A stretch of 64,000 bases of DNA, from positions 2,294,001 to 2,358,000 of the forward strand of contig BQFW01000013.1 of NCBI GenBank assembly GCA_020891255.1. Reading direction: 5' to 3'. Made by a program: the position numbers and the translations under genes. Numbering within the stretch: position 1 is the stretch's first letter; every line of letters begins with the position of its first letter. The stretch is from Entomortierella parvispora E1425 (Eukaryota > Fungi > Mortierellomycota). The notes beneath the pieces were generated by a model, which searched no databases, was not told the origin of the DNA, and saw only the letters and a program-made list of their open reading frames with translations. This document shows, one piece after another, positions 8,111 to 54,798 of the stretch.

Positions 8111-8737
8111 GTTTTTTTTTTTGCTCTTCAACAAAGGGTTTCTTCACGCTATGTGCAAATAGAAAAGATCGAAGATAGAATTATAGCTGTAAAGCTGAAG
8201 GATGCACGCAAACGATGGGATGGAGTTTGGAAAAGATAGAGTTGAAAAAGAGGAACGGACGCGAAGGTTATGTTCCTGCACCCCCCATTCTCGGTCCAAT
8301 GGGTAATATCGACCATGGTTGTTCAAAAGGTCAAGAGCAGCACAGCTCTGGCGTCCGTGCATTTTTTTTGGGGGGGGGGGGGGTGTGGCAGAGTCAAAGG
8401 CCAAGAGCTCTTCACAACAGTGGCCTTGGACAGGCTCGCAATTGTCCAGAAGGGGTTTTTTTCTGGCGTTGGTCCAATAGAACCTATGGTTGCTTGTACA
8501 ATGAAACTGTCAGGGGCCAGAGGAAGGACTTGACGACTTGCTTGCAGACTGCTTTGCTGCGGTGAACTTCTGTTTTTTGGTCCTGAGCTCGCGTGCTGGG
8601 ATCTTTGAGTGCATTTTCCTCATGAGCCACACAATCTGGACCAGCATAGACTCGGCCTCAGTTCTCCAGGTACTCGCTGTAGTTGATGATGCACTACTTG
8701 TAGTACAGCTAGCTGCAAGTCTGCAAGTTAGCTCATT

Positions 8738-11602
8738 TTATTTTATCACATATCTGATCAAGTCCCTCAAGCGGATTATCTCCGTTTTCTTTTCTTCAAT
8801 GCCATCGAAAAAAAAGTCGTCCATGTTGGACATATTGATGTACACCATTACATCCTCGGTACCGGTAGCAGGGTCCTTCTTGATATGAGTAACATGTTGT
8901 TCTCCTTTGACACAAGGGAGCTCAATGTGAATACGAAGGATACCTGTGATCTTGTGTCCTCCGGATTTGACAAAGTCCTCCCTAATCCTTGACAGCGATT
9001 TGTACATTTTCTCTCCGTCTGCCTTCATGAATCTGCAACGAATGTCAGTCGAGGTCTCATTCTCTTCATGATGCGACTGGGGTATAGTATTGCTATAAAA
9101 CTTGATGCCCAGAGAGCCAGCGTACTGAGGGTTGGAAAAGAACCATGCTCCATCTTGGCGAGTGCCAGATTTCTCAGCCAGGAGCTTGTTCGATGGGCGC
9201 TCCAAGAGGAGTTGAAGATCGCCCCTAGTGTCGTCCCTTAGTCCATACCCATATCCCTGCGCTGTGTTGATTTCGTTGATCTGAAGCTTCAGTCCCTGGC
9301 ACCATGCAGGCAATTCGATGCCTTTAAGGAAAGGGAGGTCCACCAGATAGAAGTTATTAAATCGCTGTAAAGCCCTCCAGACAAGCGGCTCCAGACAATT
9401 CCCTTTGGCGGATGATTTCAGACCGAGATTTTGGAGGATCTCGTAAAGTTGATGAAGATGGCCCAAAAAGACGAGATCCTTCCCCAACAGTTTTAGCTCT
9501 TCCTCAACAACTTCGACAACGAGCGGCTCTTCCATGAGCCAATTCACACCATCCTTCTGCAATTGCAGACTACACACAGCCTTGTCCACGAAGTCGGCTT
9601 GGGTGCTTATCGAGAACTGCGTCTTGCCCCCATGAAGCTTGTAGGCTAATACCATACGGCCGAGAAGATGCGCGACATCTCCAGTCTCGTCGTCCGTCAG
9701 AAGTTGTCTGACTCCTGCCTGTAGCGACAACTTTGATCGAGCAATCGCCAAATCTACCACTTTATCCAGTTTGGCCTGTTTGGAGCTGTGGGGTTCAATG
9801 TGGCGGCACTCAAACATTTCAGTGACAACACTAGCCGAAAATCGTGCTCTTCCTGTTAATTTCTGGCGCTTGACACGCGGGATCGTACAGTCCGAGATGT
9901 CAACAAGTTCCGATAGTACGTTCTGCACGTCTTCTTCGTTAAACACGGGGAATTGCGTAATTCTGTGGAAGTTTGTGCGCTTTCCGACCGCTGGGTATAC
10001 GTCATCCGCATCCTGCAACGACATCGACGTTCCAAGTACCACCAGCGTTGAACGCATGTGGCTAAGTGTTGCACAAAGGGGCGTGAGGAACCCCCGAAGG
10101 TGGATATCCAGTATGCGACCCTTGCCGTCGAGGATCTTGTTTTCAACAATGGAAGATGGTGCAATAAATGTCCTGGGTAAGATACGATTTCCTGCGACTT
10201 GGGCTTCATCCAGAGCGACTACGAGTCCCAGTCCTCGTTTCGTAAGATATTCAGCCAAGCTCTTCTCCACTTGATGGTGCATGTCAACGATTGTGTCTGC
10301 ATCATACATGCGCAACTTCTTGACTAGTTCTCGGATGGTTATGGCTCCTCCATTGGCCTGTTCGCGAAAGAACTGCAGCGGCTCAAGATTCGGGTCAATG
10401 CTGAAAAGGACCTGAAGAAATAGCCGTCTTGCCAGGAATTCTAGCATGACACGTTCTCCTGCAAGTCGTTTCAGGCGCGTGTCATATTGTACCAGGTCGT
10501 TTAGTGCATTTAGTGCGGGCTTCGGAAAACTTGCGTACATCTGTTCAACATCCTGTGCAAGTGTAACAAAGTTGGGATCCTTGAAGTCAGGCGATGCCAT
10601 GCTCCGTGGGTCACAGCATATGCAATATATAACGAAATGTGTCCTTGCCAGGTCAATCACTGTTGCAGTCTTTCCGGATCCTGATCGACCAACCATGGCC
10701 ACCACACTGTGGCCAGTCGTCCTGCCTACATCGCGTCCAACAATCTCGAGTAGCGTCTTGTTATCGGTCGACATTGGCTGCTTATTCCGTAATAGTCCCA
10801 GCATCGCCGGGCTCATGAGATCCTCTGTTTCACCATATGGCAGGGGTTTCTCATAGAAGGGGCCAAGTTTTTTTTTTTGAGCGGCTACAACTTTCGCTGG
10901 GTCGATATTGTGCTTGACATGCGCTTGACGGCTCTCCTCGACGATTTGTGCCAGCTCACTATAAATGCCCTTACTGGGAATGGCTTTCTTCCGGATAGTT
11001 GACGCTGAATGAAAACGAGAGGAGAAAGAGTATTAGTAAGTATTTACGGAGAGCAGAGGCTTCCTTAAAGAGCGACGCTGTATTCTGGCCCCCAGTTGAA
11101 CATTTTTGTCCAATGAAAAGGCGAGTATACATTTCACCGAAAGGCATACCTGCATGGGCTATGTGAAGCAGCACGAAATGAGGGTACAAATAAAACGAAC
11201 AATTACAACAGCCCTTTACAAATAACCTCATGCGAATGAGAAACGAAGCCTGATGTGTTTGTTACCTTCTGGTGTCGGTGGCGCCTTGACGGCGATGTGA
11301 ATGAAGCCGCTTGCGCCATCAAGGAGCAGATCCTCGCCTTGGAGGCACCAACCAGGGTTGAGCTCGTGTTCTTCCTTGAGATCCTTCAAAACCTGGTCTA
11401 TGACTTCTTTGGATTCATTCACTGAAATGCTCACTTTCCAACGTCTGAGCAGGTCTGCATCGATCTTCTCGAAGGCGTTGGGTTTCTTTTTTATAATTTC
11501 GTCCTTGAGTACTCCAACTGTCTCCTCAGATTGAATCTTGACTGGGAAGGAAGTTGAAGTTGATTCGGTGATGAGAATGCAGTTCAGCGAAAGGAGAACC
11601 AT
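8738..11602 (-). CDS. Crinkler (CRN)-type protein 1: ubiquitin-like header + P-loop NTPase + PD-(D/E)xK-like C-terminus; exons 11602-11266 and 11004-8738 (867 aa)
   Basis: Exon 1 reads LSLNCILITEST..SFPVKI....TVGVLKDEI....LRRWKV....FIHIAVKAP (CRN header). A phase-1 intron G|GTAAC...TTCAG|CG keeps the frame (337+2267 nt). Walker A GRSGSGKT, Walker B VVALDEAQ, and RQDG...SLGIKFY in the tail. Confidence 0.88.
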
Positions 11603-12214: not shown

Positions 12215-14740
12215 TGCCAGCAGCAGCAAAGTGCGCCTGGATAAACATGTGCAGCTTGATGTAGGCACACGGTGAGTGTTGCTACATCAGGTGGAGTAAC
12301 CTCTTCCTCCAGGTCCCCTCGTTTTGTTGCGCTCTGCCTGAGAGGACGAGATTCAAGCGCGTCAAAACCAGAGGACGCGACACGACGCGACGTTTGAGAT
12401 TCGCGTACCAGTTCCTGTGGTGTGCAGTCAGCAGGAATTTGTTTCCAACAAGTCAAGGACAGGTGGGTCTCCATTAATCTAACCGTGAACGAATGCTGTG
12501 AATCCACCGCCACAGACTCTTCTTGCACGCTCACTCATCAGTGGCGCCCTTCCATTAGACATGTATCTGTGCTGCTTGCCCTAGTGATCCAAGAGAGAAT
12601 CGCACGACGAAGACTACTGAGCAGGTTGGATTCTGACCAGGTCACTAGGCAAGAAAGATGAACGTCACTGATGTGGCACACGCATGCCCCAAGATGAAAT
12701 GGTCTTGATTTAGGTAGTGGTAGACTACTCCGAGATAGGAGATCTTCAAGCCTGGGTAAACCCTTGCACTAAATAAAGATGCTTGCATGGGACAGCTGCA
12801 GTCTGTCCAATCAGAGAATTCACTCTCCAATTGTGCGGGAGCCGACTCACGCCCATAAAGTTCGTACCTGACAATATGATAAAGGGCGCCTCCTGTCCCC
12901 TGGCAAAAACAAGAGTAGGATAGAAAGGGGTGCTGGTGCGAAAAAAATGCATTTATTGTGTTTCCGGTTTGTGCCTTTGCACTGTGTTTGTCGTAAGTAG
13001 GGTTATGAGGGCTACGGTGCAAGAGGCAATACCTGCTGTGTATGTCTGCTCCTAAAATCGGGGCTATGGAGATGGTACATTTGAGAACAGTAGAAACTCC
13101 TGCTTGCTAGGCTCGAATTGCGAAAGATGCTCCTTGAAATGACGTAGGATTAGAAATAGAGAGAGATCGTGAGTTGATAACATTATCGGATCTCGGTCAG
13201 AACTTCCACGATCCAAAGTGTAATCGGGAAATGGGGTTGTCTCAGCAATGGTATTTTTTGATGTTCTCCAGATCTGATGCCTTCCACGACTGCTTAGCCC
13301 ATTCCCGATTATGCTGAAGCCATTTGAGAGCCCCCTAAAGAAGCAATCAATGTTAGCCGAATGTGCTGGATCATGATGAAGTCATTGTTCCCGTGAGCGA
13401 TGGTGGCAAGCCCGGGGGCGTTGTTGATTCTTGATCGCGGCGGTTTCCCCTTGACTCTGAGGTCCTGGTGTTGCAAATGTTATTGTTTGCTGGTTTGATA
13501 TGGCTTTCTCTTATCTCGAAACGTTCCCGACCATTGAAGCAATGTGTGCTCGCTACAACAAATAGTTGTCGTTAACAATATTTCGAATTTAAAAACCATA
13601 GAGAATAGCAGCACAAAGATTGCACTTACTGCCTGAAACTCCTTCTTGATTGTAGCCGAAATCTCGTCTGATGACATCCTTTTGAGATGTCTTCCTAACC
13701 GACTCTTCTCTGTTCAGGAATGGCCCACGAGGTAGGGTAGTATCTGACCACTCCAATACCCTTGTAGTCGGGAAGGATCCTCAAACTCCTGAAAGGCCCT
13801 CATGAAAGCTGTAAGTGAAATGGTCCGAACATTTGCTCGGTCAAAGAAATCTCTGTGGATGACGAGCATTCGCGTCTTCTGGACTATTGTCCTCAAAAAG
13901 AATAAGAAACGGTTAAAAAGTTCTTGAATAAATCAACAGCAATCTACATTTATCCAATCTGGTTGATTGATCACTGAGTGAATGCGCACTCGTTACACCG
14001 AAAGTAGCACTATCGGATTCCAGGAGTCGCCACCGTCATTCCTTCTTGTCATTGGAAAGGAATAGGGACAGGTTCATGATTCTACGTTGTAGAACATGAG
14101 ACGCGTGGACTAGTTTAACACATCCTCATTGCTTTCGCGGCCGAAGATGTGCAGAGCCTTCACCATGATCCTCAAGTGACTGACCAAGAGAGTTGAGGAT
14201 CAAATCCAATCAATCATGGCAACAGTGGCAAAGGAAGGTGAAGGAGCGCCGATTACGCAAAAAGAAACACTATTTGCTCCTGTGCCATAGTCAGCATCCT
14301 CTAATGCAATTAAGAGGATGAAGACCGCCGTGTTGTTTGACAACACTGCGCTGGGAGAGGATAGGCTTAACAAACCGCGATCCACTTCGCGCATTTGCAT
14401 ATCCATTCACGAGACTTGCCTCATGTGTCTTGCAAGGAGAGATGAGAGCTCTGTCATCCGCAGGCTTGCCACTGTTGCCCCCAGATCAACACTACTGACT
14501 GTACACACTTGCCTTAGTTTGCACAAATGAGAATGAGAGGACGACTGATGACAACTGTGGGAGTTGATGGACGCTGTGAAAGTGAAAGTGGCCTAATGTC
14601 GGGGTGGCGAGATCAATCGACGGGGGATTAGGACTGACTGAAGGTAGAATGGAGAGCGAGTCGAGGGTAATGAATGACACGAGCGAGCGAGTAATCCAAA
14701 AAAAAAAGGCTCCAGGACAATCCACGCCTTAATTACGTCA
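12215..14740 (-). pseudogene. Intron-containing pseudogene of an unrecognised family (copy 1 of a ~2.5-kb duplication)
   Basis: Colinear with 47355-49850. Coding-like HRDFFDRANVRTISLTAFMRAF...YWSGQILPYL, a GTAAGT...TTGTAG intron and in-frame stops (TAA at 13511-13513 where copy 2 has CAA). Confidence 0.55.
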
Positions 14741-14775
14741 TCTTTTGGGAGATAGGGATATAAATTTCTCACTTT

Positions 14776-15720
14776 CTTGCCCACTCTCTTTGTCTCTTCA
14801 AACAAGGTAAGTCTTATTATTTGCATGTCCTTCTCTATTTCTCATCATGACGAATTTGTCACCGATGTGGGCTGTGGACTGAGGTCAATGGGCGTTCGGG
14901 GGAAAATCCCGTGCAAAGCGTTCTCGTGGATCCATTGTCCTCACTTCATGACCCTTTGTGTCGTGGAAAGGTCCACGGCCCTACATTGATGGTTTGCAGC
15001 ACCTGTCATTCTTTTGAAGGGTCTGCCTCCTTGCGCTTGTTCGAATCGAGCCTGAGCCTCTGGTTAGCAAGGTTGCCATCCAAATTTGTTCGTGTTTGCT
15101 CTTGTCTTGTTAAAACTGATGCGCGGCTGTGGACTGAGGACAATGGGCGTTCGGGGGAAAATCCCGTGCAAAGCGTTCTCGTGGATCCATTGTCCTCACT
15201 TCATGACCCTTTGTGTCGTGGAAAGGTCCACGGCCCTACATTGATGGTCTGCAGCACCTGTCATTCTTTTGAAGGGTCTGCCTCCTTGCGCTTGAATTCG
15301 AATCGAGCCTGAGCCTCTGGTAAGCAAGGTTGCCATCCAAGACAGCGCGTTTACAACTCCCCTTTCTACCTCCTTGCATGCAGTTCATACTCGCTCTCTC
15401 TCCCTCTCTTGCCCACTCTCTTTGTCTCTTCAAACAAGGTAAGTCTTATTATTTGCATGTCCTTCTCTATTTCTCATCATGACGAATTTGTCACCGATGT
15501 GGGCTGTGGACTGAGGTCAATGGGCGTTTGGGGGAAAATCCCGTGCAAAGCGTTCTCATGGATCCATTATCCTCACTTCATGACCTTTTGTGTCATGGAA
15601 AGGTCCACGGCCCTACATTGATGGTTTGCAGCACCTGTCATTCTTTTGAAGGGTCTGCCCCTTGCGCTTGAATTCGAATCGAGCCTGAGCCTCTCGTTAG
15701 CAAGGTTGCCATCCAAATTC
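14776..15720 (+). repeat. Imperfect tandem array: ~215-bp core x3, two copies with a ~100-bp extension
   Basis: GCTGTGGACTGAGG.CAATGGGCGTT...GCAAGGTTGCCATCCAA at about 14870, 15125 and 15500; CTTGCCCACTCTCTTTGTCTCTTCAAACAAGGTAAG at 14776 and 15408. Confidence 0.85.
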
Positions 15721-15889
15721 GATCATGTTTGTAAATCGAACTCCTTGCGGTATATCTGAACCCGGCGTGTGCAGGAAACGAATTCATGACAACTCTCGTT
15801 GAGGACCGAAGTGGAAGTGAAGCTTGTCCAGTCCGTATATCCCTTCAAGAACGCGCAGAGAATCAGCTTCTTAAAAGGCTTCAAATTAG

Positions 15890-18800
15890 CATTTCCATAA
15901 AATTCACGGTTCATTTTTGTTGAATGGATTTTTATGGACGGCCTATGAGGGCGTGTGTAACATAGTCAGGGCCATTGCCAATGGACCGTCAAAACCAATG
16001 AAATTTTGTTTTCGCCCCTTTTTATCCATTATGAGATGATGAGCCACAGTCCCCCCTGACGGTCTGGCATCGTCTTTGATCAACGACTGCCTGTCGAATC
16101 TCCGTACGTACTTCTCTCCTCCCTCCCTCCCTCCCCTCCCCTCTCCCTCCTCCCTCTCCTCCCTCTCTTCCCTTTCCTCTCACTCACTGTTTCTCTGTCG
16201 TATTTTTCATGTCTGCGTGTGTGAGAGCGTGTGTGCGCACGCGCATGTGTATTTTATTAAAAAAAAAAAAAAAAGGAAAAAAAAAAAAACTATGGTTGCT
16301 CTTTTGCTTTCACCTTTCCTTTTCCTTGCTCTTTTTCTTCTGAGCTTCCAAACCTCTTGGAAACCTTTTTGGGCAAAAGCTTGTAGTATGCTGCAATTGA
16401 GCAAGAGTTGCAATCTTCCTTCAGCATGTCCTGAAAGTCTTGAAGAGCTTGTGCAATCATAGCCATGTCAATTGGTGTGTTATCCGGGATGTAGCGCAAG
16501 ACCGATTGAACAATCGTCTTCTTGAATAAGTAGAGACCTGCAAACCCGTTTTTCCCATCAGGGTTAGCCGAATTCTTTTCACTGCGCCATAGATTTGAAT
16601 ACCATGAATCCATCGTCACGACTGAGGGGCTACCATTGACACCATAGAACCACTCTTGCCAAACCCCCTCTAGCGTGTTTGGCCGAGGGACCAACGTGCA
16701 CAAAGGCATGTGCCTGGGCATAGGAGGGTCAACCTCGCCTCTCTCTCTTCTGTAGTGCGCAATTACTACAGCCACAGCTTGGATTTTATCTTGAGTTTTG
16801 ACAGAATGGCCGCTGTCATCATGACAACGTGGATGGATAATGGAAGGAGGAGGAGCGACTAAGCTCGATTCTTCTACCCTCGATAATTGCAGGCTGAGAA
16901 TCGGGGCACCTGGGGCTTCCTGCTCTTTTGACAGCAGACCCAAACGAGGTAGAACGGACCCTTCAGTGATACTCAAGCCTCCTTGTTCTTGTTCTTGGGT
17001 TATAGAGGTCATCCGACCAGCAGCATCTGACAGAGAGGCCGCTAATGACTTCACTAGGGCATCAATCTTGTCATTCACCTTGCCCATACCTTGAACGACA
17101 CCCTCAAGGACATACTGATTACGCTGCTCTGCATGCAAGGCTCGGCGGTCCTGGTAGACTTGGAGCCTCTCAATGTTATCCGAGATCTTGGAGATCGCAG
17201 TGCTCATTGTTTGTTGTCGGGAAGTTTGCTGTGATATGAGGGCATTGGCGGCCTCCAGTTGCCGCTGAATAACAGGTGCCACGGACGTTAGGTTGCTAGG
17301 GCGAAGGGAAGTGTGGGCTAACGTTTCTGCCATCAACTTCTTAAAGGCCAAAAATTCCGGAGACCTGAATACTTCACGCTTGAAAATAGGGTGCCGGGAA
17401 GATTTGTTCTCGGCCAATAAAAAAGACGGCGGCGTCCTGCAGAATGACTTTCCGCAAGTGGGCAAGCAGACAAAGATGCCGTCGACGCGAGATTGCCTCA
17501 TCAGAGAGAACTTTCCGTGCAGCCCTTTTCTTGATTTTTTTTGATCTTAATATTTTCCTCTTGACGTCCGTAGAATATGCTCCGATCCAGCATGATGTTG
17601 TCGATGGTCTGGATCCAGAAAGGGTCGTAGTGCTTTTTGTCCTCAGGATTTGAGCATGCACGTTCAATGAATGGGAAGACCATGCGCTGTAGCTCGAGGT
17701 CTGGAATGACATTACGCTCCAGCCAAAAGTTTTCCGTACGGCCATTCTCAAATCCGGCCATTTGCAACGCCACAGATGCATCGACGCCGTCGAGGTAATG
17801 GGTGATGAGTCGGTTTGTCCCCCAGCCGCCGTGTTTCGATATATCTTCGTGCGTGGCTCCAGTCAGCCGCGCCAAAAAAGCACCCAGTCGTCTACTGAGA
17901 TGGGTTGCTTTGCCTTTGACACCAATGTTGAGATAATCCTGGACCTCGCGTGTCTGCTTGTACTGTGTGGCATATCGTATCTCTGATGTTCGTGTGGTGG
18001 ACTTTGACAACAAGTGATAGTTGACCCAGTCGTGATCTTCTACTCTAGGCGGAGGGGCAGCCGATGAGGAAGTAGGCTAGATAATTCAGATTAGAAAGGG
18101 GTAGAGCCTCACCCAGCTCATAAAATGTACGTCATAATCAAAAAGTTCAAACTTACCAACCAGTACTCAAGCAGATAAAAGGCTAGAGCACCGACAGGAC
18201 ACGCTTCCACGTCTGGGTTTCGTACCACGACATTATATCGGATCTTGCCATTATTGTTCATTTTTCCTTGTCTTGTCATCAAAACCACACCAAGGACGAA
18301 TTTTCTCTCCTGCTCCCGATCTTTCCGCACTGGACGTGCAACATTCTGGCCAAAGAGGTCGATCAATCTCATCCTGCGTGTGGTTTCACTGCGGCACATC
18401 ATAAAAAATCGAAGGGCGGCGTCAGCTCGATGGCGAAGACCAGTTATCACTCGTGTCCATTTGCTCTGTTCGCCCTGTATATTATGGTGCCAAAAGTGCA
18501 CCATTACCATCTTGACATTCTCCAAAGGGTCCTCCTCGACAAAGTTTGCTGAGCCTTGATCGGTATCTGTCGCTCTCTTCGTGACCGCCACTCTTCTTTC
18601 GTAACTCGTAATCAGGTCCCTCAGGTAATCCATCGGCTTTCTCTCGAGACACCTGAACATGACTTTGTTGTCTGGGTCCACACGTTGCTGACGGTAGAGT
18701 TCTCCGATGGCGGATGCGTGTAATTTTACCGTTGAGAGAGACGGTGCATTGGCCGGTAATCCCCTGTCGGAATGACATACATTCTCACCGAGGTCGTCAT

Positions 18801-20041
18801 TGACACTATCGCTGTCACTATCGTTGTCATCATCAGTGTCGTCGCTATCATGACCATCGCTGTCACTGTCACTGTTGTCGTCGCCTCTTTCTCTCTCGTC
18901 TTCAATTGCTTTTTCTTTTCCCGCGCATTCCAGTAGGTAAAATGATGATACCTGTTAACATGGAAGTTGACATAGAGGTCATTCTGATGAGAATACGTAG
19001 ACAATGGAGATACAAAATGTGATTATCGGTTCTTACCCTTGCTTGGGTCCTCTTTCGATGCAGTTAAACAAGTCCAGTAACGCAAGACTTTCTCTTCGAT
19101 GACGTTGGCGTCTGAGTATCCAGCTTCCGTGCACCATTTCTAGTCATTAATGAGTTTATGGGTGTTTGTAGTAGACGAATTAGAAAAAAAAAAAAAAAAA
19201 AAAAGGATAAAGGGCACTGTCAGCCATGATCAGCCACGATCGTACACTTGGCCCAACTTACAGAGAATACGGCTTGATATCGGTCATAGAGTGCACGCGT
19301 CGACGTCTTGATACTTTCCCTTCGCTGTTCGCGGACAAGTTGCATACAGGCCAACTCCTTTTGTCTCAAGTCAAGCTCATGAGCTTGACGCGCCTTCTGT
19401 CCGCATGGAACTGCGCGACAATAGAAGTACTAGACGAGATTCCTTGCGTGTTGTCGTGTTGTCGTGACGCCGCGAGCTCGGACGCGTCGAGTGAATCCTG
19501 CAGGTACAACGAAGCCCAGAGAGATGGAGCATGAGTATATAGGCAAACAGAATGGCATAGAGGCACACAGATGGCACTGTTCATTCCGCAGCATGCGTAG
19601 AGCTGACGTAGTCGAGTCGAGCATTACATTAGATTCACGTTGAGATGAATCGACTTGCTGGGAGCATGGTTGCTGGCCAGTTGTCGGAGGCTCTCGTTTC
19701 TGTCGTTTTCGCGTCCGCTGTTGTTGCTGTTGTTGCTGCTTGGGTTCCTGGGGCGGTTCCTGGTCCTGTTGAGACAATTGATGCTTGGGCATTTGGAGAA
19801 GGTGCGCCAATGAAAGAATGTAAAAGAATGATGTAGCAAATGTGCCGCATGCATGAACGGGCCCAGGCGCCTGACAACCCCCCTTTATTCCCGTGGACAA
19901 AAAGAAAATATCTGTTTTTTGGCCCTTGTTCAATTTCATGGGCTGGTTCATCGGGCCAATAATGGACTGCAGGCGCGACGACGATTGGCCGACTTGGTCA
20001 CGTGACTTTATGGACCGTCAATGTCCAGGAAGCGTCTCATT
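15890..20041 (-). mobile_element. Fungal Crypton (tyrosine-recombinase DNA transposon), monomer 1
   Basis: 4148-bp unit bounded by CATT at 15890-15893 and 20038-20041; near-identical to the next unit. Confidence 0.88.
16290..19792 (-). pseudogene. Crypton recombinase + GCR1_C-like gene, monomer 1 (two extra homopolymer bases frameshift the last exon)
   Basis: Same multi-exon gene as monomer 2, but with T8 vs T7 near 17535-17542 and A6 vs A5 near 17419-17424; these could be real slippage or sequencing error. The start codon is putative. Confidence 0.7.
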
Positions 20042-23000
20042 TCCATAAAATTCACGGTTCATTTTTGTTGAATGGATTTTTATGGACGGCCTATGAGGGC
20101 GTGTGTAACATAGTCAGGGCCATTGCCAATGGACCGTCAAAACCAATGAAATTTTGTTTTCGCCCCTTTTTATCCATTATGAGATGATGAGCCACAGTCC
20201 CCCCTGACGGTCTGGCATCGTCTTTGATCAACGACTGCCTGTCGAATCTCCGTACGTACTTCTCTCCTCCCTCCCTCCCTCCCCTCCCCTCTCCCTCCTC
20301 CCTCTCCTCCCTCTCTTCCCTTTCCTCTCACTCACTGTTTCTCTGTCGTATTTTTCATGTCTGCGTGTGTGAGAGCGTGTGTGCGCACGCGCATGTGTAT
20401 TTTATTAAAAAAAAAAAAAAAAGGAAAAAAAAAAAACTATGGTTGCTCTTTTGCTTTCACCTTTCCTTTTCCTTGCTCTTTTTCTTCTGAGCTTCCAAAC
20501 CTCTTGGAAACCTTTTTGGGCAAAAGCTTGTAGTATGCTGCAATTGAGCAAGAGTTGCAATCTTCCTTCAGCATGTCCTGAAAGTCTTGAAGAGCTTGTG
20601 CAATCATAGCCATGTCAATTGGTGTGTTATCCGGGATGTAGCGCAAGACCGATTGAACAATCGTCTTCTTGAATAAGTAGAGACCTGCAAACCCGTTTTT
20701 CCCATCAGGGTTAGCCGAATTCTTTTCACTGCGCCATAGATTTGAATACCATGAATCCATCGTCACGACTGAGGGGCTACCATTGACACCATAGAACCAC
20801 TCTTGCCAAACCCCCTCTAGCGTGTTTGGCCGAGGGACCAACGTGCACAAAGGCATGTGCCTGGGCATAGGAGGGTCAACCTCGCCTCTCTCTCTTCTGT
20901 AGTGCGCAATTACTACAGCCACAGCTTGGATTTTATCTTGAGTTTTGACAGAATGGCCGCTGTCATCATGACAACGTGGATGGATAATGGAAGGAGGAGG
21001 AGCGACTAAGCTCGATTCTTCTACCCTCGATAATTGCAGGCTGAGAATCGGGGCACCTGGGGCTTCCTGCTCTTTTGACAGCAGACCCAAACGAGGTAGA
21101 ACGGACCCTTCAGTGATACTCAAGCCTCCTTGTTCTTGTTCTTGGGTTATAGAGGTCATCCGACCAGCAGCATCTGACAGAGAGGCCGCTAATGACTTCA
21201 CTAGGGCATCAATCTTGTCATTCACCTTGCCCATACCTTGAACGACACCCTCAAGGACATACTGATTACGCTGCTCTGCATGCAAGGCTCGGCGGTCCTG
21301 GTAGACTTGGAGCCTCTCAATGTTATCCGAGATCTTGGAGATCGCAGTGCTCATTGTTTGTTGTCGGGAAGTTTGCTGTGATATGAGGGCATTGGCGGCC
21401 TCCAGTTGCCGCTGAATAACAGGTGCCACGGACGTTAGGTTGCTAGGGCGAAGGGAAGTGTGGGCTAACGTTTCTGCCATCAACTTCTTAAAGGCCAAAA
21501 ATTCCGGAGACCTGAATACTTCACGCTTGAAAATAGGGTGCCGGGAAGATTTGTTCTCGGCCAATAAAAAGACGGCGGCGTCCTGCAGAATGACTTTCCG
21601 CAAGTGGGCAAGCAGACAAAGATGCCGTCGACGCGAGATTGCCTCATCAGAGAGAACTTTCCGTGCAGCCCTTTTCTTGATTTTTTTGATCTTAATATTT
21701 TCCTCTTGACGTCCGTAGAATATGCTCCGATCCAGCATGATGTTGTCGATGGTCTGGATCCAGAAAGGGTCGTAGTGCTTTTTGTCCTCAGGATTTGAGC
21801 ATGCACGTTCAATGAATGGGAAGACCATGCGCTGTAGCTCGAGGTCTGGAATGACATTACGCTCCAGCCAAAAGTTTTCCGTACGGCCATTCTCAAATCC
21901 GGCCATTTGCAACGCCACAGATGCATCGACGCCGTCGAGGTAATGGGTGATGAGTCGGTTTGTCCCCCAGCCGCCGTGTTTCGATATATCTTCGTGCGTG
22001 GCTCCAGTCAGCCGCGCCAAAAAAGCACCCAGTCGTCTACTGAGATGGGTTGCTTTGCCTTTGACACCAATGTTGAGATAATCCTGGACCTCGCGTGTCT
22101 GCTTGTACTGTGTGGCATATCGTATCTCTGATGTTCGTGTGGTGGACTTTGACAACAAGTGATAGTTGACCCAGTCGTGATCTTCTACTCTAGGCGGAGG
22201 GGCAGCCGATGAGGAAGTAGGCTAGATAATTCAGATTAGAAAGGGGTAGAGCCTCACCCAGCTCATAAAATGTACGTCATAATCAAAAAGTTCAAACTTA
22301 CCAACCAGTACTCAAGCAGATAAAAGGCTAGAGCACCGACAGGACACGCTTCCACGTCTGGGTTTCGTACCACGACATTATATCGGATCTTGCCATTATT
22401 GTTCATTTTTCCTTGTCTTGTCATCAAAACCACACCAAGGACGAATTTTCTCTCCTGCTCCCGATCTTTCCGCACTGGACGTGCAACATTCTGGCCAAAG
22501 AGGTCGATCAATCTCATCCTGCGTGTGGTTTCACTGCGGCACATCATAAAAAATCGAAGGGCGGCGTCAGCTCGATGGCGAAGACCAGTTATCACTCGTG
22601 TCCATTTGCTCTGTTCGCCCTGTATATTATGGTGCCAAAAGTGCACCATTACCATCTTGACATTCTCCAAAGGGTCCTCCTCGACAAAGTTTGCTGAGCC
22701 TTGATCGGTATCTGTCGCTCTCTTCGTGACCGCCACTCTTCTTTCGTAACTCGTAATCAGGTCCCTCAGGTAATCCATCGGCTTTCTCTCGAGACACCTG
22801 AACATGACTTTGTTGTCTGGGTCCACACGTTGCTGACGGTAGAGTTCTCCGATGGCGGATGCGTGTAATTTTACCGTTGAGAGAGACGGTGCATTGGCCG
22901 GTAATCCCCTGTCGGAATGACATACATTCTCACCGAGGTCGTCATTGACACTATCGCTGTCACTATCGTTGTCATCATCAGTGTCGTCGCTATCATGACC

Positions 23001-24186
23001 ATCGCTGTCACTGTCACTGTTGTCGTCGCCTCTTTCTCTCTCGTCTTCAATTGCTTTTTCTTTTCCCGCGCATTCCAGTAGGTAAAATGATGATACCTGT
23101 TAACATGGAAGTTGACATAGAGGTCATTCTGATGAGAATACGTAGACAATGGAGATACAAAATGTGATTATCGGTTCTTACCCTTGCTTGGGTCCTCTTT
23201 CGATGCAGTTAAACAAGTCCAGTAACGCAAGACTTTCTCTTCGATGACGTTGGCGTCTGAGTATCCAGCTTCCGTGCACCATTTCTAGTCATTAATGAGT
23301 TTATGGGTGTTTGTAGTAGACGAATTAGAAAAAAAAAAAAAAAAAAAAAGGATAAAGGGCACTGTCAGCCATGATCAGCCACGATCGTACACTTGGCCCA
23401 ACTTACAGAGAATACGGCTTGATATCGGTCATAGAGTGCACGCGTCGACGTCTTGATACTTTCCCTTCGCTGTTCGCGGACAAGTTGCATACAGGCCAAC
23501 TCCTTTTGTCTCAAGTCAAGCTCATGAGCTTGACGCGCCTTCTGTCCGCATGGAACTGCGCGACAATAGAAGTACTAGACGAGATTCCTTGCGTGTTGTC
23601 GTGTTGTCGTGACGCCGCGAGCTCGGACGCGTCGAGTGAATCCTGCAGGTACAACGAAGCCCAGAGAGATGGAGCATGAGTATATAGGCAAACAGAATGG
23701 CATAGAGGCACACAGATGGCACTGTTCATTCCGCAGCATGCGTAGAGCTGACGTAGTCGAGTCGAGCATTACATTAGATTCACGTTGAGATGAATCGACT
23801 TGCTGGGAGCATGGTTGCTGGCCAGTTGTCGGAGGCTCTCGTTTCTGTCGTTTTCGCGTCCGCTGTTGTTGCTGTTGTTGCTGCTTGGGTTCCTGGGGCG
23901 GTTCCTGGTCCTGTTGAGACAATTGATGCTTGGGCATTTGGAGAAGGTGCGCCAATGAAAGAATGTAAAAGAATGATGTAGCAAATGTGCCGCATGCATG
24001 AACGGGCCCAGGCGCCTGACAACCCCCCTTTATTCCCGTGGACAAAAAGAAAATATCTGTTTTTTGGCCCTTGTTCAATTTCATGGGCTGGTTCATCGGG
24101 CCAATAATGGACTGCAGGCGCGACGACGATTGGCCGACTTGGTCACGTGACTTTATGGACCGTCAATGTCCAGGAAGCGTCTCATT
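20038..24186 (-). mobile_element. Fungal Crypton, monomer 2
   Basis: 4145-bp unit ending at CATT 24183-24186, after which the hAT sequence resumes. Confidence 0.88.
20437..23937 (-). CDS. Crypton tyrosine recombinase (Ndc10-like) with C-terminal GCR1_C-like domain; spliced, 5' exons only partly resolved
   Basis: F..|KWC...Y.D, RHRADAALRFFMMCRSET (R), RQGKMN (K), CPVGALAFYL, HLSRR (HxxR), HGGW, THYL (Y); C-terminal TLEGVWQEWFYG..SPSV...Y...WR. Introns such as TTG|GTAAGT...CTAG|CCT keep the frame. Confidence 0.82.
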
Positions 24187-24625
24187 GCAAATCGATCTGG
24201 TTCTGACTCCGGCTTTTATGAAGTTCAGGGTGCCGCGACCCTGGTCCTCGCACAGCTGCCCTGCAAGATGTATGGCATTTATGTTAAATATAAGGCTTCT
24301 GCGGTAGCGTATGCCGATCAACCTCAAGCCTTCTGGACGGAGCGTCAGTACAACCCAAGCTTCAGCGAACTGGCGGCTATAGGACCGTCCTACTTAGGCA
24401 TTCAGGCAACCTCACTGCATCGGAGCGAGCCTTCAGTCAAGCATTATTCTTCCCCCTCCAAGGGACTCTATCTGTGTGTATCTTTCTTTATTGATCTCAC
24501 GTGACTCCAAAGAAAAAATTGCTCTGCAATAAAGGGATCTCTCGATGCATCTCTCAGATCTCCATCTTTCTTTTTCACGCGGCCGGACATTAATCATCCC
24601 CCGAAACTCGACTGATCCTGATCTA

Positions 24626-25534
24626 ATGTCCGATGCCACCACCCAATCTTCCCCCGACATTGCCACCTTGGCAGCTGCGGTCCTATCTCTTACCCAGAAA
24701 CTATCTGACCAAGATCGACTCCTCAAGGAGCTACAGGACCAAGCCACTGAGAGCGACATTCGTCCTGGACAAGTGGTCTACAAGAGTGACCGAGCAACCA
24801 CTCTCTTACAATACCCGGAACTTCAGAATCAGTACCCAGCAATCACACAAAAACACTTCTTCAACACTGTCCTCCCTGCAGGACATAACCTCTTTGACTG
24901 GAACGACTATCACTACACCGATGGTATGGTCTACAAAGCACCACCAGTCTTGGAACATCAGGGCGTCACCCTCCCAGAGTTGGCTCGCAAACATGAGCAG
25001 GACCTGGCCAAGATTCAGGGACACATGGCCAACTCCACGAGATTGTTCGACACACTCGTCGACGAAATTCTCACATATGAAATGGACGCAGACGAGCTCG
25101 CCAAGCACGTCATTTCATTTGTCAACACTGCCCGCATCTTGGTATCTAACGACGCCTCCAAGATCAGCCTCATGCGGAAGGACATCTATCTCCGCCATCT
25201 GGAACTCCCAACTTCAGAGCCCCAGGAGAATGCTATCCTCACTCTGGAAGACCTCGCCAAACGTAGAACGACTGTGGACCTCGTCAGCAAGACTTACACC
25301 AAGCCAAGCGTCAAGGAAAGCAAGAGACCCTTGCATAAGAAACCCGGGTTCAAGAAGAAGCAACCCGAGGACTCAGACAAGAAATCTACCCACGAGAAGT
25401 CAAAGGAGTCAACAAATAGCCGTGACGGTGGCGGCAGGAACAACCGCCCTTACAAGGCCAGAAAGTCGAGCAACTACGACGACAACAAGTCTGCAGGAGA
25501 CAAGGGAAACGGATCAGAGAAGGAGCGCCAGTAG
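24626..25534 (+). CDS. gag: DIRS Gag-like protein
   Basis: First ORF after the left ITR, with an N-terminal coiled coil, YKAPP..L...HEQDLAKIQ..MAN.TR..D, and a basic Lys/Asn/Ser-rich tail; similar to the other two gags here. Confidence 0.85.
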   Translation: MSDATTQSSPDIATLAAAVLSLTQKLSDQDRLLKELQDQATESDIRPGQVVYKSDRATTLLQYPELQNQYPAITQKHFFNTVLPAGHNLFDWNDYHYTDGMVYKAPPVLEHQGVTLPELARKHEQDLAKIQGHMANSTRLFDTLVDEILTYEMDADELAKHVISFVNTARILVSNDASKISLMRKDIYLRHLELPTSEPQENAILTLEDLAKRRTTVDLVSKTYTKPSVKESKRPLHKKPGFKKKQPEDSDKKSTHEKSKESTNSRDGGGRNNRPYKARKSSNYDDNKSAGDKGNGSEKERQ

Positions 25535-28442
25535 GAGCACGCCTTCTCCAATTCAAACGGGAATGGGAGGAGATGACAGATTCAACTTGGGTCAACAACA
25601 TTGTCAGCAAGGGGTACTCGATCGTCTTCAGCAAACCACCGCCAATGCGCCTCCCACCAATCCACGATCCCTACACCACACCAGCGGAGAAGGAGGAAAT
25701 AAACAAAGAGATCGTTTCTTTATTACAAAAAAGGGCCATAGAAGAATGCTCAGGCTGGGGATATTACAGCCGTCTATTCACAATACCCAAGAAGACAGGG
25801 GGCCTCCGCCCTGTCCTCAACCTTCGACCTCTCAACCAACACCTGAAGGCCCCACATTTCAAGATGGAGACGCTCACTCACATCTGCCAAATGTTGCGGC
25901 CGAAGGATTGGTTGACATCAATCGACTTAAGCGACGCCTTCCTCCACGTCGCCGTACAGCCGAAAAGTCGACGCTACCTACGCTTCCGATGGCACGGGAA
26001 GACATATCAGTTCAGGACCCTTCCATTCGGTCTCTCACTGTCCCCTTACGTCTTCACCAAGATCATACGACCCATCCTGCAGTGGGCACGCAAACAGGGG
26101 ATCCGCATTTCAGCATATTTAGACGACATATTAGTTGCCGCAACCAGCAGAGAAGAGTCAGAAAGACACACTCTCATGGTACGTCAGAAGCTGGAACGAC
26201 TGGGATTCCTCATTCAGAACGAGAAATCAATGCTTACGCCTTTGCAACAGATCAATCACCTGGGATTTCACATAGACACCGTCCAAATGTCACTGTCAGT
26301 CCCGGGGAACAAGATCCGAGACCTGAGGAGAGAAGCCAACAAGATGCTGCAGGCAGCAGCAGTCCCGCTGAAGAGATTGGCGTCCTTCATAGGGAGAGCG
26401 ATGTCCATGACAGTGGCCATCTTTCCAGCACGACTAAAGACGCGCCGACTCATCCAAGCTCAGAACTCAGCATTAGCAAGGAACTGCCCATGGACGGAGT
26501 CTGTCACACTGGACCACCAATCGAAAGAGGATCTTCAATGGTGGTGCAAAAACCTGTCGACATGGAATGGTCAGGGATTCCTCCCCCAGAGGTCAGAGAT
26601 CGATGTATTCACGGATGCATCTCAGGACGCATGGGGGATAGTCTACGAGGACGAGGAGATCTCGAAGACATGGACACAGGAGGAGCAACCGTATCACATC
26701 AATTACAAGGAATTGAAGGTGATATGGCATCTGATACACCTGCCGGACATGCGAGGCAGGACAATCCAGGTAATCTGCGACAATACGACGGCAATTGCGC
26801 AGATAAACAAGTTTGGAGGGACCAAATCAAAGCGATTGCTGGACCTAGCAACACAAATTTGGGACTATTGCATCAAGACGGGAACCCGACTCATGACAAC
26901 GTACGTACCGTCTCAGTTCAATCCAGCCGACTCACCATCGAGACGCATGACAGCACAGTTGGAGTGGTCGATCAACAACTCGTTCTATCGACAGCTAGAC
27001 TCGACCTGGGGACATCACTCAGTCGATCTATTCGCCACGGCAAAGAACGCGAAGACTCAACGCTACGTCTCCTGGATGCACGAGGAGACAGCGTGGAGAC
27101 AGGATGCGTTCAGCTTCAGTTGGAAGGACCTGGGCCGAGTCTACATCTGCCCACCGTGGTCACTCCTCAACCGAGTCCTGGAGAAGATCAGAACGGACAA
27201 GGTGCAGGCGACAGTGATCACACCACAGTGGCCTGCTATGATTTGGTACCCTACAATCCAGGCCATGTCAACACACAGCCCAATCCCAGTACCGAGGACA
27301 ATGGTACAACCCGCACCAGGAAACAGCCCACAGCCACTGGAGCGGAACCCCATGTGGCAGTTAACAGCGTGGAGCGTCGACGGCAGCAAGCTGTGACCAC
27401 AGGGGCCGACGCAGGAGTCATTCGCCGATTGTTTGACTCCAAATCCGCTCAGGAAAGGAACAAGAGCACATCGAGTCAACGAACATTCACGCAATGGATG
27501 CAGGAGAGAGGTCGACCACTAGAGGATACCTCACCTACGGACTTGATGAACTTCCTGAACTATGGAGTGGAGATTAGGGCTTGGAAGCCGCAAACGGCCC
27601 GAGCCTACTTGTCATCAGTACTCAAACTCTTCCCGAGGGACCGTCAGGAAGAGTGGCGAGCGGATGAAAATCTGTCAGATTTTCTAAAGGTCATTGGTGC
27701 ACACACACTCAAGCGGCTACGTCACGACGACGCGGATACGACACCTATCTTCATCGAGATCCTCAAGAAGGGTGAGAACAAGGGCCTAAACATTAGGCAC
27801 TTGACATCGAAGACATGCTTCTTGCTGGGACTGGTAGGACTCCTTCGACCGGACGACTTGGCTTGTATAGACACAAAGCAGTGCCGAATTCGAGATGGAG
27901 TGCTGGAATTGACCATCGTCTCTCCCAAGGAACGTCGAGATGGACAACGCATTATCAAGACCGTCTTGATACATCCGCACACAGATCCAATCTTTTGCCC
28001 GGTAGAAGTGTATCAGGAGTACCGTAGGCGTACTGAGAAACACGACGAACATGCAAGGCAGCAACACCCCAAGCTGGACAAGGAGTTGTTGGAGGTTGAA
28101 ATAATACCCCTAATCAGGGAGATCAGTTATGGCAAATCGCCTCTGGGAGCAGAGAGAATCTCCAAGTACCTTGCCGTCCTCCTGGATCTGATGCCCAGAG
28201 AGAAGGGGCAACCCCGCCCAAAGGTCAGGGCGCTGGGAGCTACGAACGCCCTCAAGAAAGGGGTTCCGTTGGAGGAAGTGACCGTTCAAGGGAACTGGTC
28301 ATCGCCTACCATGGTGGAGAACTACTATCGAATTTCAAGGACCCTCGTTAGCAACTTCACCAACACTCTTCTTCCCCGGCATCTGGATTCACAGATAGAG
28401 TCCCTTGGAGGGGGAAGAATAATGTCTAGCGTTGCCGAATGA
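24633..28442 (+). CDS. Long overprinted ORF (1269 aa) whose last ~340 aa are the DIRS tyrosine recombinase
   Basis: Stop-free from the AUG 7 nt after the gag AUG. The recombinase part (about 27395 onward) has LLRPDD (R), SPKE (K), CPV, PKVR, GNWS (W) and ENYY (Y). Confidence 0.85.
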   Translation: MPPPNLPPTLPPWQLRSYLLPRNYLTKIDSSRSYRTKPLRATFVLDKWSTRVTEQPLSYNTRNFRISTQQSHKNTSSTLSSLQDITSLTGTTITTPMVWSTKHHQSWNIRASPSQSWLANMSRTWPRFRDTWPTPRDCSTHSSTKFSHMKWTQTSSPSTSFHLSTLPASWYLTTPPRSASCGRTSISAIWNSQLQSPRRMLSSLWKTSPNVERLWTSSARLTPSQASRKARDPCIRNPGSRRSNPRTQTRNLPTRSQRSQQIAVTVAAGTTALTRPESRATTTTTSLQETRETDQRRSASRSTPSPIQTGMGGDDRFNLGQQHCQQGVLDRLQQTTANAPPTNPRSLHHTSGEGGNKQRDRFFITKKGHRRMLRLGILQPSIHNTQEDRGPPPCPQPSTSQPTPEGPTFQDGDAHSHLPNVAAEGLVDINRLKRRLPPRRRTAEKSTLPTLPMAREDISVQDPSIRSLTVPLRLHQDHTTHPAVGTQTGDPHFSIFRRHISCRNQQRRVRKTHSHGTSEAGTTGIPHSEREINAYAFATDQSPGISHRHRPNVTVSPGEQDPRPEERSQQDAAGSSSPAEEIGVLHRESDVHDSGHLSSTTKDAPTHPSSELSISKELPMDGVCHTGPPIERGSSMVVQKPVDMEWSGIPPPEVRDRCIHGCISGRMGDSLRGRGDLEDMDTGGATVSHQLQGIEGDMASDTPAGHARQDNPGNLRQYDGNCADKQVWRDQIKAIAGPSNTNLGLLHQDGNPTHDNVRTVSVQSSRLTIETHDSTVGVVDQQLVLSTARLDLGTSLSRSIRHGKEREDSTLRLLDARGDSVETGCVQLQLEGPGPSLHLPTVVTPQPSPGEDQNGQGAGDSDHTTVACYDLVPYNPGHVNTQPNPSTEDNGTTRTRKQPTATGAEPHVAVNSVERRRQQAVTTGADAGVIRRLFDSKSAQERNKSTSSQRTFTQWMQERGRPLEDTSPTDLMNFLNYGVEIRAWKPQTARAYLSSVLKLFPRDRQEEWRADENLSDFLKVIGAHTLKRLRHDDADTTPIFIEILKKGENKGLNIRHLTSKTCFLLGLVGLLRPDDLACIDTKQCRIRDGVLELTIVSPKERRDGQRIIKTVLIHPHTDPIFCPVEVYQEYRRRTEKHDEHARQQHPKLDKELLEVEIIPLIREISYGKSPLGAERISKYLAVLLDLMPREKGQPRPKVRALGATNALKKGVPLEEVTVQGNWSSPTMVENYYRISRTLVSNFTNTLLPRHLDSQIESLGGGRIMSSVAE
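25504..25548 (+). other. Candidate -1 ribosomal frameshift signal (G GGA AAC + 6-nt spacer + 7-bp stem)
   Basis: The heptamer 25504-25510 is in gag frame. GAGAAGG 25517-25523 pairs with CCTTCTC 25542-25548, the gag UAG lies in the loop, and the -1 frame is open into pol. Confidence 0.62.
25504..27396 (+). CDS. pol: DIRS Pol: reverse transcriptase, RNase H, DAM-like methyltransferase (no own AUG; -1 frame relative to gag)
   Basis: PVGARL..F...W, LRPVLNLR, IDLSDAF, LPFGL, AYLDD, FTDAS, HINYKEL, CDNTT, DLFAT, CPPW. Confidence 0.93.
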   Translation, partial: GKRIREGAPVGARLLQFKREWEEMTDSTWVNNIVSKGYSIVFSKPPPMRLPPIHDPYTTPAEKEEINKEIVSLLQKRAIEECSGWGYYSRLFTIPKKTGGLRPVLNLRPLNQHLKAPHFKMETLTHICQMLRPKDWLTSIDLSDAFLHVAVQPKSRRYLRFRWHGKTYQFRTLPFGLSLSPYVFTKIIRPILQWARKQGIRISAYLDDILVAATSREESERHTLMVRQKLERLGFLIQNEKSMLTPLQQINHLGFHIDTVQMSLSVPGNKIRDLRREANKMLQAAAVPLKRLASFIGRAMSMTVAIFPARLKTRRLIQAQNSALARNCPWTESVTLDHQSKEDLQWWCKNLSTWNGQGFLPQRSEIDVFTDASQDAWGIVYEDEEISKTWTQEEQPYHINYKELKVIWHLIHLPDMRGRTIQVICDNTTAIAQINKFGGTKSKRLLDLATQIWDYCIKTGTRLMTTYVPSQFNPADSPSRRMTAQLEWSINNSFYRQLDSTWGHHSVDLFATAKNAKTQRYVSWMHEETAWRQDAFSFSWKDLGRVYICPPWSLLNRVLEKIRTDKVQATVITPQWPAMIWYPTIQAMSTHSPIPVPRTMVQPAPGNSPQPLERNPMWQLTAWSVDGSKL

Positions 28443-29387
28443 AATGAAGGCTAAAGCAACATTTATTCGACACCGACAAGGGACTCTAGATGTCCCACCC
28501 GGCCCGCCCTAGGCATATCTTTGCGAGTAGATGGAGATCTGAGAGATGCATCGAGAGATCCCTTTATTGCAGAGCAATTTTTTCTTTGGAGTCACGTGAG
28601 ATCAATAAAGAAAGATACACACAGATAGAGTCCCTTGTCGGTGTCGAATAAATGTTGCTTTAGCCTTCATTTCATTCGGCAACGCTAGACAGGATTGATC
28701 CCCGACAAAAAAAGAGCATCCACTTAAGACAATAATTTCAACTCTATAATTTGTGCTCAGAGCTTTGCCCTTGTTATTCCAGAGATTGCAAAGATACGAA
28801 GGAAAGAAGAACTTGCAAGACTGGAGAGGGCACGCAGAGTACCTGTAGTTTGAAATGAACATACGATAATAAATATCTTCATTTGTTCCCTTTTTTTTTT
28901 TTTTTTTTTGAGGAGTGAGAGGCTGGGACCGAAGGGAAGTGACATCGTTGTTTTTGTTACCAACGATAGGAAGGAGCAAGGAGAGTACGACAGAGATGAA
29001 AACAAGGACCATGACAATGAAAAAAAGAACGCGCCACGGCAGGAAAAACAGCACGCTCGGCAGGAACGGAGAACATGCCACGGCGGGAAGGAGAACACGC
29101 CTGCTGGGCGGGAAAGAGAGCTCGCCTGGGCGGGCGTCACCAAATTCACGCCGCAGTGTGACACGGAAGTCGCCGCGGCGTGTGGCTTAGAACACGCCAC
29201 GCTCAGCGTGTTCCCAAACTTTCGGGTGAGTTCGCACAGTGTGAATTGAGCCTGGACACGGCTAAAATTTGGACTCGCAGTCTCTATGACAGCAAGAACC
29301 GCATTTTGGGGATTCGAACTACGTACATGTACTGCACATACCGACAAGGGAGTTGGAAAAAATTACAGCAAGTCTCAACTCTTATGT

Positions 29388-51202: not shown

Positions 51203-51247
51203 ATTGAGACGCTTGCTGGGCATTGGCGGTCCATAAATCAAGTGACC
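51203..51247 (-). mobile_element. Diverged Crypton terminus
   Basis: The minus strand GGTCACTTGATTTATGGACCGCCAATGCCCAGCAAGCGTCTCAAT aligns to the Crypton end GGTCACGTGACTTTATGGACCGTCAATGTCCAGGAAGCGTCTCATT (24141-24186). Confidence 0.7.
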
Positions 51248-51978
51248 AAGATTGAAAAGTTGGTGAAGAGTTTGCCTCTAAGGGTGCTGTAGGCGTTGGA
51301 CAGGTGATGGAGCTGCAGCAGGATAGTGACTTTTGGGGAACTGGATGGTCGACCAGTTATCACTGACGAAGAGGAGGGGATCATGACCACGATGCCTCGT
51401 CGACAGTTGTCCGTTACTGCTTGAATCCTGGTCCTTGGACCAGCTTTGCACCAATATCGTCCGCACCTTCATCTTCTTTGTTCGCTCCTGTCGTAAGTAC
51501 CTGGTCAAAGGTCGACCTTTTTGGAGTGATAGTCCTTGACGGTTACAACTACGCTACCCCTTTCTCACCGACACTGCCAACAAAGCTCGGCGAGTCAGCC
51601 ATTTAAAAAACATTATGCTCGGGTCAAACTCGAGGAGCTGTGGCTTATCCCCCGATGCTAAAAGCTGGACTCAAGGACGCTGAGATCGAGTCTCTGAGAA
51701 TGGCTGATGCAAATGCCCATTGGGTACCCACCAGCAGAACTAGTGCCAAGCACCCTACAGAGGATCAATATACACCGCCTGTTTACTGCCGTTTGAGCGA
51801 AAACTGTGTTTTTTTCAGACCCAGTTAAAAGAGGCTGTTGCTCCTCCCTGCTCGTTATTGTTTCTCCATTTTGTATAGCAGCGTTGAGGCACCTCTCCCA
51901 TCTTCTCTTTATTGACTTCCAACTCCATTTAAAAAGCACCGCACTTCTTTCTTCGCCCCATTTTAGTTTGGTAGTACT

Positions 51979-54787: not shown

Positions 54788-54798
54788 CTCAGCTCATT

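Follow-up and report, generated by a model that had tools for sequence, protein, structure and literature searches.

How does a transposon come to stand twice, head to tail, at a single insertion site? The question is raised by contig C13 of the fungus Entomortierella parvispora E1425 (genome of 38.9 Mb in 20 contigs), where the 64,000-nucleotide window that we analysed (C13:2294001-2358000) carries two adjacent units of a Crypton, a transposon with a tyrosine recombinase, at window positions 15890-24186 (C13:2309890-2318186). Positions below are those of the window unless a contig is named. We put the chance at roughly two in three that this dimer, together with a second one found elsewhere in the genome, is real and was produced by a recombinase that joined the right end of one copy to the left end of another copy of the same element.

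The pair consists of units 15890-20037 (4148 bp) and 20038-24182 (4145 bp). Alignment of 15890-20041 with 20038-24186 by BLAST and MAFFT gave 99.93% identity over 4152 columns, with no mismatches and three one-base gaps, all of which are differences in homopolymer length with the longer run in unit 1 (an extra A at 16277, A6 versus A5 at 17419, and T8 versus T7 at 17535). The assembly was built from GridION nanopore reads with Canu correction, SMARTdenovo, Nanopolish and Pilon, at 409x (PMC8759367). Homopolymer lengths in an eight-copy repeat of a nanopore assembly are unreliable, so noise may account for all three differences. As assembled, the dimer is confirmed: two near-identical Crypton units with CATT at all three junctions (15890, 20038 and 24183), just as a first-pass annotation of this sequence had described when it reported two units of about 4.15 kb that differ only in homopolymer lengths. 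The units and their junctions are as follows.

15890 to 20037, plus strand (orientation of the element; its gene lies on the minus strand): Crypton unit 1, with ends as in four single-copy insertions.
20038 to 24182, plus strand: Crypton unit 2, 4145 bp.
15890 to 15893, plus strand: left junction, hAT flank/CATT, with CATT in seven of seven genomic left ends.
20038 to 20041, plus strand: middle junction, GCGTCT/CATT/TCCATAAA, an end-to-end (circle-type) joint that is identical in the dimer on contig C8.
24183 to 24186, plus strand: right junction; its CATT is the core copy on the target side, and CATT (four loci) or CAAT (four loci) stands here across the genome.

To the base, the boundaries of the unit are fixed independently of the dimer, because the same ends are found in four single-copy insertions. 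The genome contains eight full-length copies, approximately 100% identical to one another, at six loci (the C13 pair, a second pair on C8, and single copies on C12, C7, C14 and C15), along with older fragments. The left end always reads flank/CATTTCC in the four single insertions and in the C8 and C13 dimers, and the right end is always GCGTCT, followed by CATT (C13, C12, C7 and C15) or by CAAT (C8, C14 and two fragments). A pattern search recovered 11 right termini genome-wide, as against none for a reversed control. Given that either CATT or CAAT follows the right ends, the target is CAWT, with CA alone invariant, rather than CATT.

The second head-to-tail dimer (C8:2273121-2281417) has the same middle joint as that on C13, so that dimers account for two of the six full-length loci. 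At both, the middle joint consists of the right end, the core and the left end, a precise end-to-end joint, and the earlier claim that the middle junction carries the sequence of an excised-circle junction is borne out exactly. That the joint falls on the element ends at both loci argues for a recombinase and against generic duplication.

The same evidence bears on whether the dimers are artefacts of assembly, each locus holding one copy and the unit having been written twice from joint-bearing reads (free circles or concatemers) or from mis-overlapped repeat reads. Residual homopolymer noise in this eight-copy repeat of a nanopore assembly speaks for such an origin, as does the fact that the units within a dimer share every reliable variant and differ in homopolymers only, as a duplicated consensus would. 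We nevertheless regard an artefact as unlikely, given that an 8.3-kb dimer is easily spanned at 409x long-read coverage, that assemblers tend to collapse repeats rather than to expand them, and that the boundary of the duplication lies exactly at the element ends at two separate loci. An artefact with a boundary of this precision would need joint-bearing molecules in the sample, which would itself support the existence of circles.

Judged by its predicted products, the element is a CryptonF that encodes a tyrosine recombinase with a GCR1_C domain. Its minus strand contains a single gene of four exons and three introns, all of the form GTAAG..AG, modelled by mapping the annotated E. parvispora protein EMPS_07616 and a 67%-identical relative (P0001) and from the splice sites; protein tests were run exon by exon. 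Pfam NDC10_II matched exons 3 and 4 (E 1e-8 and 3e-6), a fold passed on from Crypton recombinases to Ndc10 of budding yeast, and GCR1_C (PF12550) matched residues 441-510 of the 573-residue open reading frame (ORF) in the last exon of unit 2 (E 6e-9; 36.5 bits against a cut-off of 23).

20437 to 23729, minus strand: Crypton gene of unit 2; exons 23729-23407, 23284-23182, 23096-22302 and 22221-20437, stop codon TAG at 20439-20437, start codon provisional.
16290 to 19584, minus strand: Crypton gene of unit 1; exons 19584-19262, 19139-19037, 18951-18157 and 18076-16290, the last exon having two breaks relative to unit 2, at 17535 and 17419.
21940 to 22538, minus strand: tyrosine recombinase of unit 2, predicted catalytic residues R 22538-22536, K 22409-22407, H 22047-22045, R 22038-22036, W 21969-21967, Y 21942-21940; in unit 1 they lie 4145 bases lower.

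A search of PDB chain sequences with a piece of the last exon gave no recombinase match, so the catalytic residues were judged from alignments within the genome. The R (MMCRSE), the K, the H-x-x-R (THLSRR), the W and the Y (ITHYL) all fall in invariant or nearly invariant columns when compared with 6 to 10 Crypton recombinases of the same genome. No pair of inverted repeats of at least 30 nucleotides was found in 14000-26000, where the long direct repeats are the two units alone. Within the unit there is no reverse transcriptase, the sizeable conserved ORFs are the recombinase exons alone, and Pfam returns NDC10_II and GCR1_C only. A short direct repeat is present at both termini, similar across copies and matching the target, at the six full-length loci and in two fragments. 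The identification of the element as a Crypton accordingly stands, on the strength of its tyrosine recombinase and GCR1_C domain, its lack of long repeats and the short terminal repeat that its target matches.

We compared all eight copies. Almost all differences among them are homopolymer lengths. A G/T substitution at alignment column 1459 places T in both C8 units and in the C12 copy, and the C15 copy has private changes. The family is young, with at most one to two substitutions in 4.1 kb among eight copies, and each dimer is internally homogeneous while the loci differ from each other. Two frame-breaking features of the C13 units stand out.

23542 to 23543, minus strand: one-base deletion private to the C13 units (GACAAGAAG changed to GACAGAAG), a frameshift in exon 1, alignment column 3513.
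23055 to 23066, minus strand: A-run in exon 3, A5 here, frame-breaking in both C13 units as assembled, alignment column 3024.

The exon-1 deletion recurs in unit 1 at 19397-19398. The deleted base is kept by the other six copies and by five relatives of 74-96% identity, in which the stretch ...FHADKKARQAHELD... is in frame, and the deletion is on this comparison a derived frameshift upstream of the predicted recombinase domain. The two C13 units are thus of common descent, since a private deletion in both implies descent from one mutated element, or later homogenisation. With this frameshift the C13 dimer is probably unable to make its own recombinase; it is probably non-autonomous, to be mobilised in trans, if at all.

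The shared deletion also weighs on the possibility of two independent insertions, in which a circle from another locus landed on the junction of an unrelated resident copy. Such a hybrid junction retains one cognate half-site and would be expected to serve as a better target than a bare CAWT. However, the deletion is in no other copy or relative, and two insertions would call either for a donor, since lost, that had this mutation too, or for gene conversion afterwards. There are about 20 CAWT sites per kb on the two strands together, and from this frequency the chance that a second insertion falls on the resident junction in the correct orientation is of the order of 1e-5 per insertion, yet two of the six loci are dimeric. 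We hold two independent insertions to be highly improbable.

The remaining frame breaks are less easily read. The exon 3 A-run is A5 in six copies and A4 in C7 and C12, and nanopore error may account for the frame break there. In exon 4, seven copies have T6 at a T-run (the 17419 site) and unit 2 alone has T5; the T5 frame is read straight through by the 67%-identical relative, as well as being the length found in diverged copies. An intron or a programmed frameshift at this run was considered and rejected on account of the T5 read-through in the relative and of T5 in the diverged copies, which leave T6 as either a true frameshift or a nanopore error. None of the eight assembled full-length copies has an intact ORF; each carries one to four breaks of a single base, almost all of them within A/T runs of 4-8, and in a nanopore assembly coding integrity cannot be judged from such breaks. 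For eight copies with almost no substitutions to have arisen, a working source must have existed, and many of the frame states are therefore probably nanopore errors. This pattern suggests residual nanopore error in the multi-copy repeats of the E1425 assembly, and frame calls inside repeats need care. The first-pass annotation had taken the full set of catalytic residues as a sign of recent activity. Both units do encode the full set (R, K, H-x-x-R, W, Y), and the family is young, but as a sign of activity the residues were given too much weight, for the ORFs are interrupted and exon 1 carries the deletion.

Besides the full-length copies, several relics of the element were noted. A 45-bp stretch at 51207-51250 on the minus strand of the window, 89% identical to the right terminus of the Crypton, ends in ...GCGTCT followed by CAAT and is counted among the 11 right termini; the recombinase gene is absent nearby, and the stretch may be either a relic in the form of a solo right end or the terminus left by an element that has been lost. 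A 96%-identical derivative at C10:1300476-1303081, the copy annotated EMPS_07616, is missing unit positions 43-1510 together with the final 26 bp of its right end; on either side of it stands a direct repeat, about 60 bp long, of non-element DNA (...ccgtgacacgtctgtagcatgcg.gatatttgtca). A fragment on C9 stops at unit position 4119, the same end point as that of the C10 derivative. We asked whether truncated copies break at CAWT sites, and they do not (a 478-bp right end on C7 and a 107-bp piece on C9). Scans of Joint Genome Institute (JGI) metagenome contigs for the joint and for a degenerate right terminus were both blank.

If a recombinase joined the ends, as we prefer to think, it would be supplied in trans from another copy and would pair the right end (...GCGTCT) with the left end (TCCATAAA...), with strand exchange at the short shared core (CA, within CAWT). 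Were both ends to come from one copy, the products would be a circle and an empty CAWT site; were they to come from two copies of the same element, the product would be flank-unit-CATT-unit-flank. Three routes could lead to this outcome. In the first, sister chromatids would exchange left end against right end, a use of the excision chemistry in trans that passes through no free circle. In the second, an excised circle would integrate into the junction of a resident copy, and in the third the integrating circle would already be dimeric. The internal homogeneity of each dimer, taken from the assembled sequence, favours partners of common descent, and all three routes would give the same sequence. 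The dimer had been called a direct snapshot of circle re-integration, and this goes too far, since sister-chromatid exchange gives the same structure, as does a circle that recombines homologously with a resident copy.

The last of these leads to the possibility that the dimers are real but were made by the host, either through homologous recombination of a circle or sister copy with the resident copy or through gene conversion after unequal exchange, with the recombinase unneeded for the joining. Were a circle to integrate by homology into a resident copy identical to it, exactly the same sequence would result, and the identity of the units over 4.1 kb leaves no trace of a crossover. Against this, a pre-formed end-to-end joint is still required, so a circle or dimer would have to be made first, and two equally young Crypton families in this genome lack dimers. 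We think a host-made origin quite unlikely, and we infer that a recombinase made the joint and that the dimers are present in the DNA as they are in the assembly.

Several points count against this preference for a recombinase acting on two real copies. The dimers are seen in one nanopore assembly, and their homopolymer-only differences and shared private variants would fit a falsely duplicated single copy too. No assembled copy has an intact ORF, which makes a working source of recombinase an assumption. The two other Crypton families of the same genome, with four identical copies each, have no dimers. Finally, the joint in hand is a chromosomal one, and neither a free circle nor an empty allele has been observed.

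The two other families are about 37-43% identical in the recombinase and have open last exons of 719-731 codons. All of their copies are single, the first family lying at C5:1723911-1725075, C6:729094-730257, C7:2944743-2945907 and C11:1250972-1252135, and the second at C1:2421042-2422158, C4:2126912-2128027, C6:90939-92054 and C9:540141-541256. The genome also has several Crypton-like recombinase genes that are older and more distant. Outside E. parvispora, homologues occur in Mortierella alpina and Linnemannia zychae.

Around the middle joint we found a cluster of short repeats.

19962 to 20134, plus strand: four WATGGAC sites in the same orientation, at -76, -28, +44 and +91 from the joint, with an inverted TCCAT at +4.

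Three of the four sites lie inside 17-nucleotide TTTATGGACCGTCAATG-like repeats. The expected number of WATGGAC sites in 240 nucleotides is 0.08, for a Poisson probability of about 1.6e-6 that was calculated post hoc. Within the whole unit, four of the five ATGGAC/GTCCAT sites are no more than 120 nucleotides from an end. The cluster may be regarded as a set of candidate binding sites for the recombinase or for GCR1_C.

The dimer interrupts a probable relic of a hAT transposase, which is itself cut a second time by a DIRS-type element.

15738 to 15889, plus strand: left part of the hAT transposase relic (...LLAVYLNPACAGNEF...LQIS), placed by protein alignment to a paralogue.
24187 to 24441, plus strand: hAT transposase relic between the dimer and the DIRS element, with 79% DNA identity within the PF05699 matches of two hAT paralogues.
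24442 to 28689, plus strand: DIRS-type retrotransposon, a separate insertion that cuts the hAT relic, whose homology to hAT is picked up again at 28690-28795.

When the dimer and one CATT are removed, the reading frame runs open across the joint of the flanks (...LQISI/ANRSG...), as the first-pass annotation had stated. The left flank aligns with residues 238-263 of a paralogous hAT transposase, and residue 13 of the right flank with residue 308; the two are collinear, separated within a variable linker by a few residues, and for each flank the alignment score was reached by none of 2000 shuffles. The paralogues, on C15 and C11, have a 435-codon open frame (stop to stop) with a PF05699 match at 39 bits. 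The relic itself is degenerate and has no Pfam match, though both of its flanks align in order to the C15 and C11 paralogues, and the interrupted sequence is probably of hAT origin. No empty-site paralogue of the C13 insertion was found: the flanks beside the dimer are unique in DNA, and only the distant protein-level hAT paralogue was usable.

On its right side the dimer is separated from the DIRS insertion by 255 bp, so that transposons of three classes are nested at this locus, two of the classes being users of tyrosine recombinases. Directly to the left of the hAT relic, at 14767-15731, a repeat about 260 bp long stands three times (71-97% identity, spacing 255 and 377), with relatives at C13:2369643-2370022 and on C1, C15 and C8; these repeats gave no indication of a tRNA origin and no tandem-repeat signal. 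The window also contains a segmental duplication that pairs 8730-11242 with 54791-57296 (97%) and 12238-14707 with 47396-49837 (89-93%). The duplicate stops at about 14707/49837, short of the repeat block and of the hAT relic.

Among CryptonF elements, Cn1 of Cryptococcus neoformans is reportedly that of Goodwin and colleagues in 2003, and the proposal that Cryptons move by way of a recombinase-made circle is likewise said to date from 2003. Similar to the CryptonF elements surveyed by Kojima and Jurka in 2011 (PMC3212892), the E. parvispora element is about 4 kb long, has one intron-containing gene in which the tyrosine recombinase is followed by GCR1_C, and is without terminal inverted repeats or long direct repeats, with a short target-like direct repeat at both ends. 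Unlike most fungal CryptonF elements, which have 6-bp repeats, its core is 4 bp and degenerate (CAWT), and its host belongs to the Mortierellomycotina, where the only 'Zygomycota' host of that survey is Rhizopus oryzae (PMC3212892).

In the literature searched, which did not cover Goodwin et al. 2003, we found no description of head-to-tail Crypton dimers. Tandem arrays are documented for a bacterial element with a tyrosine recombinase, Salmonella genomic island 1 (SGI1), whose head-to-tail copies have an attP-type joint between them, arise by integration into a resident junction or by integration of multimers, and are frequent at some sites (PMC2297512). The bacterial arrays differ in having long, specific att sites and conjugative or phage transfer, whereas the present element is a transposon of a eukaryote, its core is 4 bp long and its possible targets are many. 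Lambda polylysogens and arrays of integrative and conjugative elements are further bacterial tandem arrays made by tyrosine recombinases. Starships, the giant transposons with tyrosine-recombinase 'captains', are fungal, as is the present element, and a circular intermediate has been detected for them by reads across joined ends (bioRxiv 10.64898/2026.09.21.753150). They are, however, tens to hundreds of kb long with cargo, and the evidence in their case consists of free-circle junction reads rather than chromosomal dimers.

Another parallel is CryptonF-1_cRei of Chlamydomonas reinhardtii, the first Crypton whose movement was observed (Lopez-Cortegano et al. 2023, PMC9977147). That element excises cleanly yet gains copies, belongs to a young multi-copy family as does ours, and has a terminus that resembles the target with a variable third position (CACCG versus CAYCG there, CATT versus CAWT here). 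Insertions, clean excisions, and inversions and translocations associated with recombinase sites were directly observed there in mutation-accumulation lines, whereas in E. parvispora we see the end state in one assembly; tandem dimers go unmentioned in the passages of that study consulted (PMC9977147). It is tempting, if doubtful, to regard dimers as the step by which a cut-and-paste Crypton gains copies, and not as accidents. Sister-chromatid exchange, or re-integration beside a resident copy, would produce a dimer, and the later excision of one unit would free a circle while the donor site retained one copy. If true, this would explain how the active Chlamydomonas Crypton combines clean excision with a rising copy number.

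Beyond what the first-pass annotation contained, the present analysis adds the second dimer, the exact ends, the CAWT target and the shared inactivating mutation. We found no demonstration of a Crypton circle in the literature searched, and a 2026 preprint on Starships still terms it a hypothesis (bioRxiv 10.64898/2026.09.21.753150). The chromosomal joint described here has the sequence predicted for the circle junction; it occurs at two loci, in a family that is very young, and provides sequence-level support for end-to-end joining. As read from one nanopore assembly, it fits the long-proposed, unproven circle model. E. parvispora is well suited to testing that model, as its nanopore, Illumina and RNA reads are publicly available and a culture collection keeps the strain. 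As far as can be seen, Crypton dimers are an expected by-product of Crypton recombination that has apparently gone unreported, and if real they would offer an excising element a simple route to copy gain.

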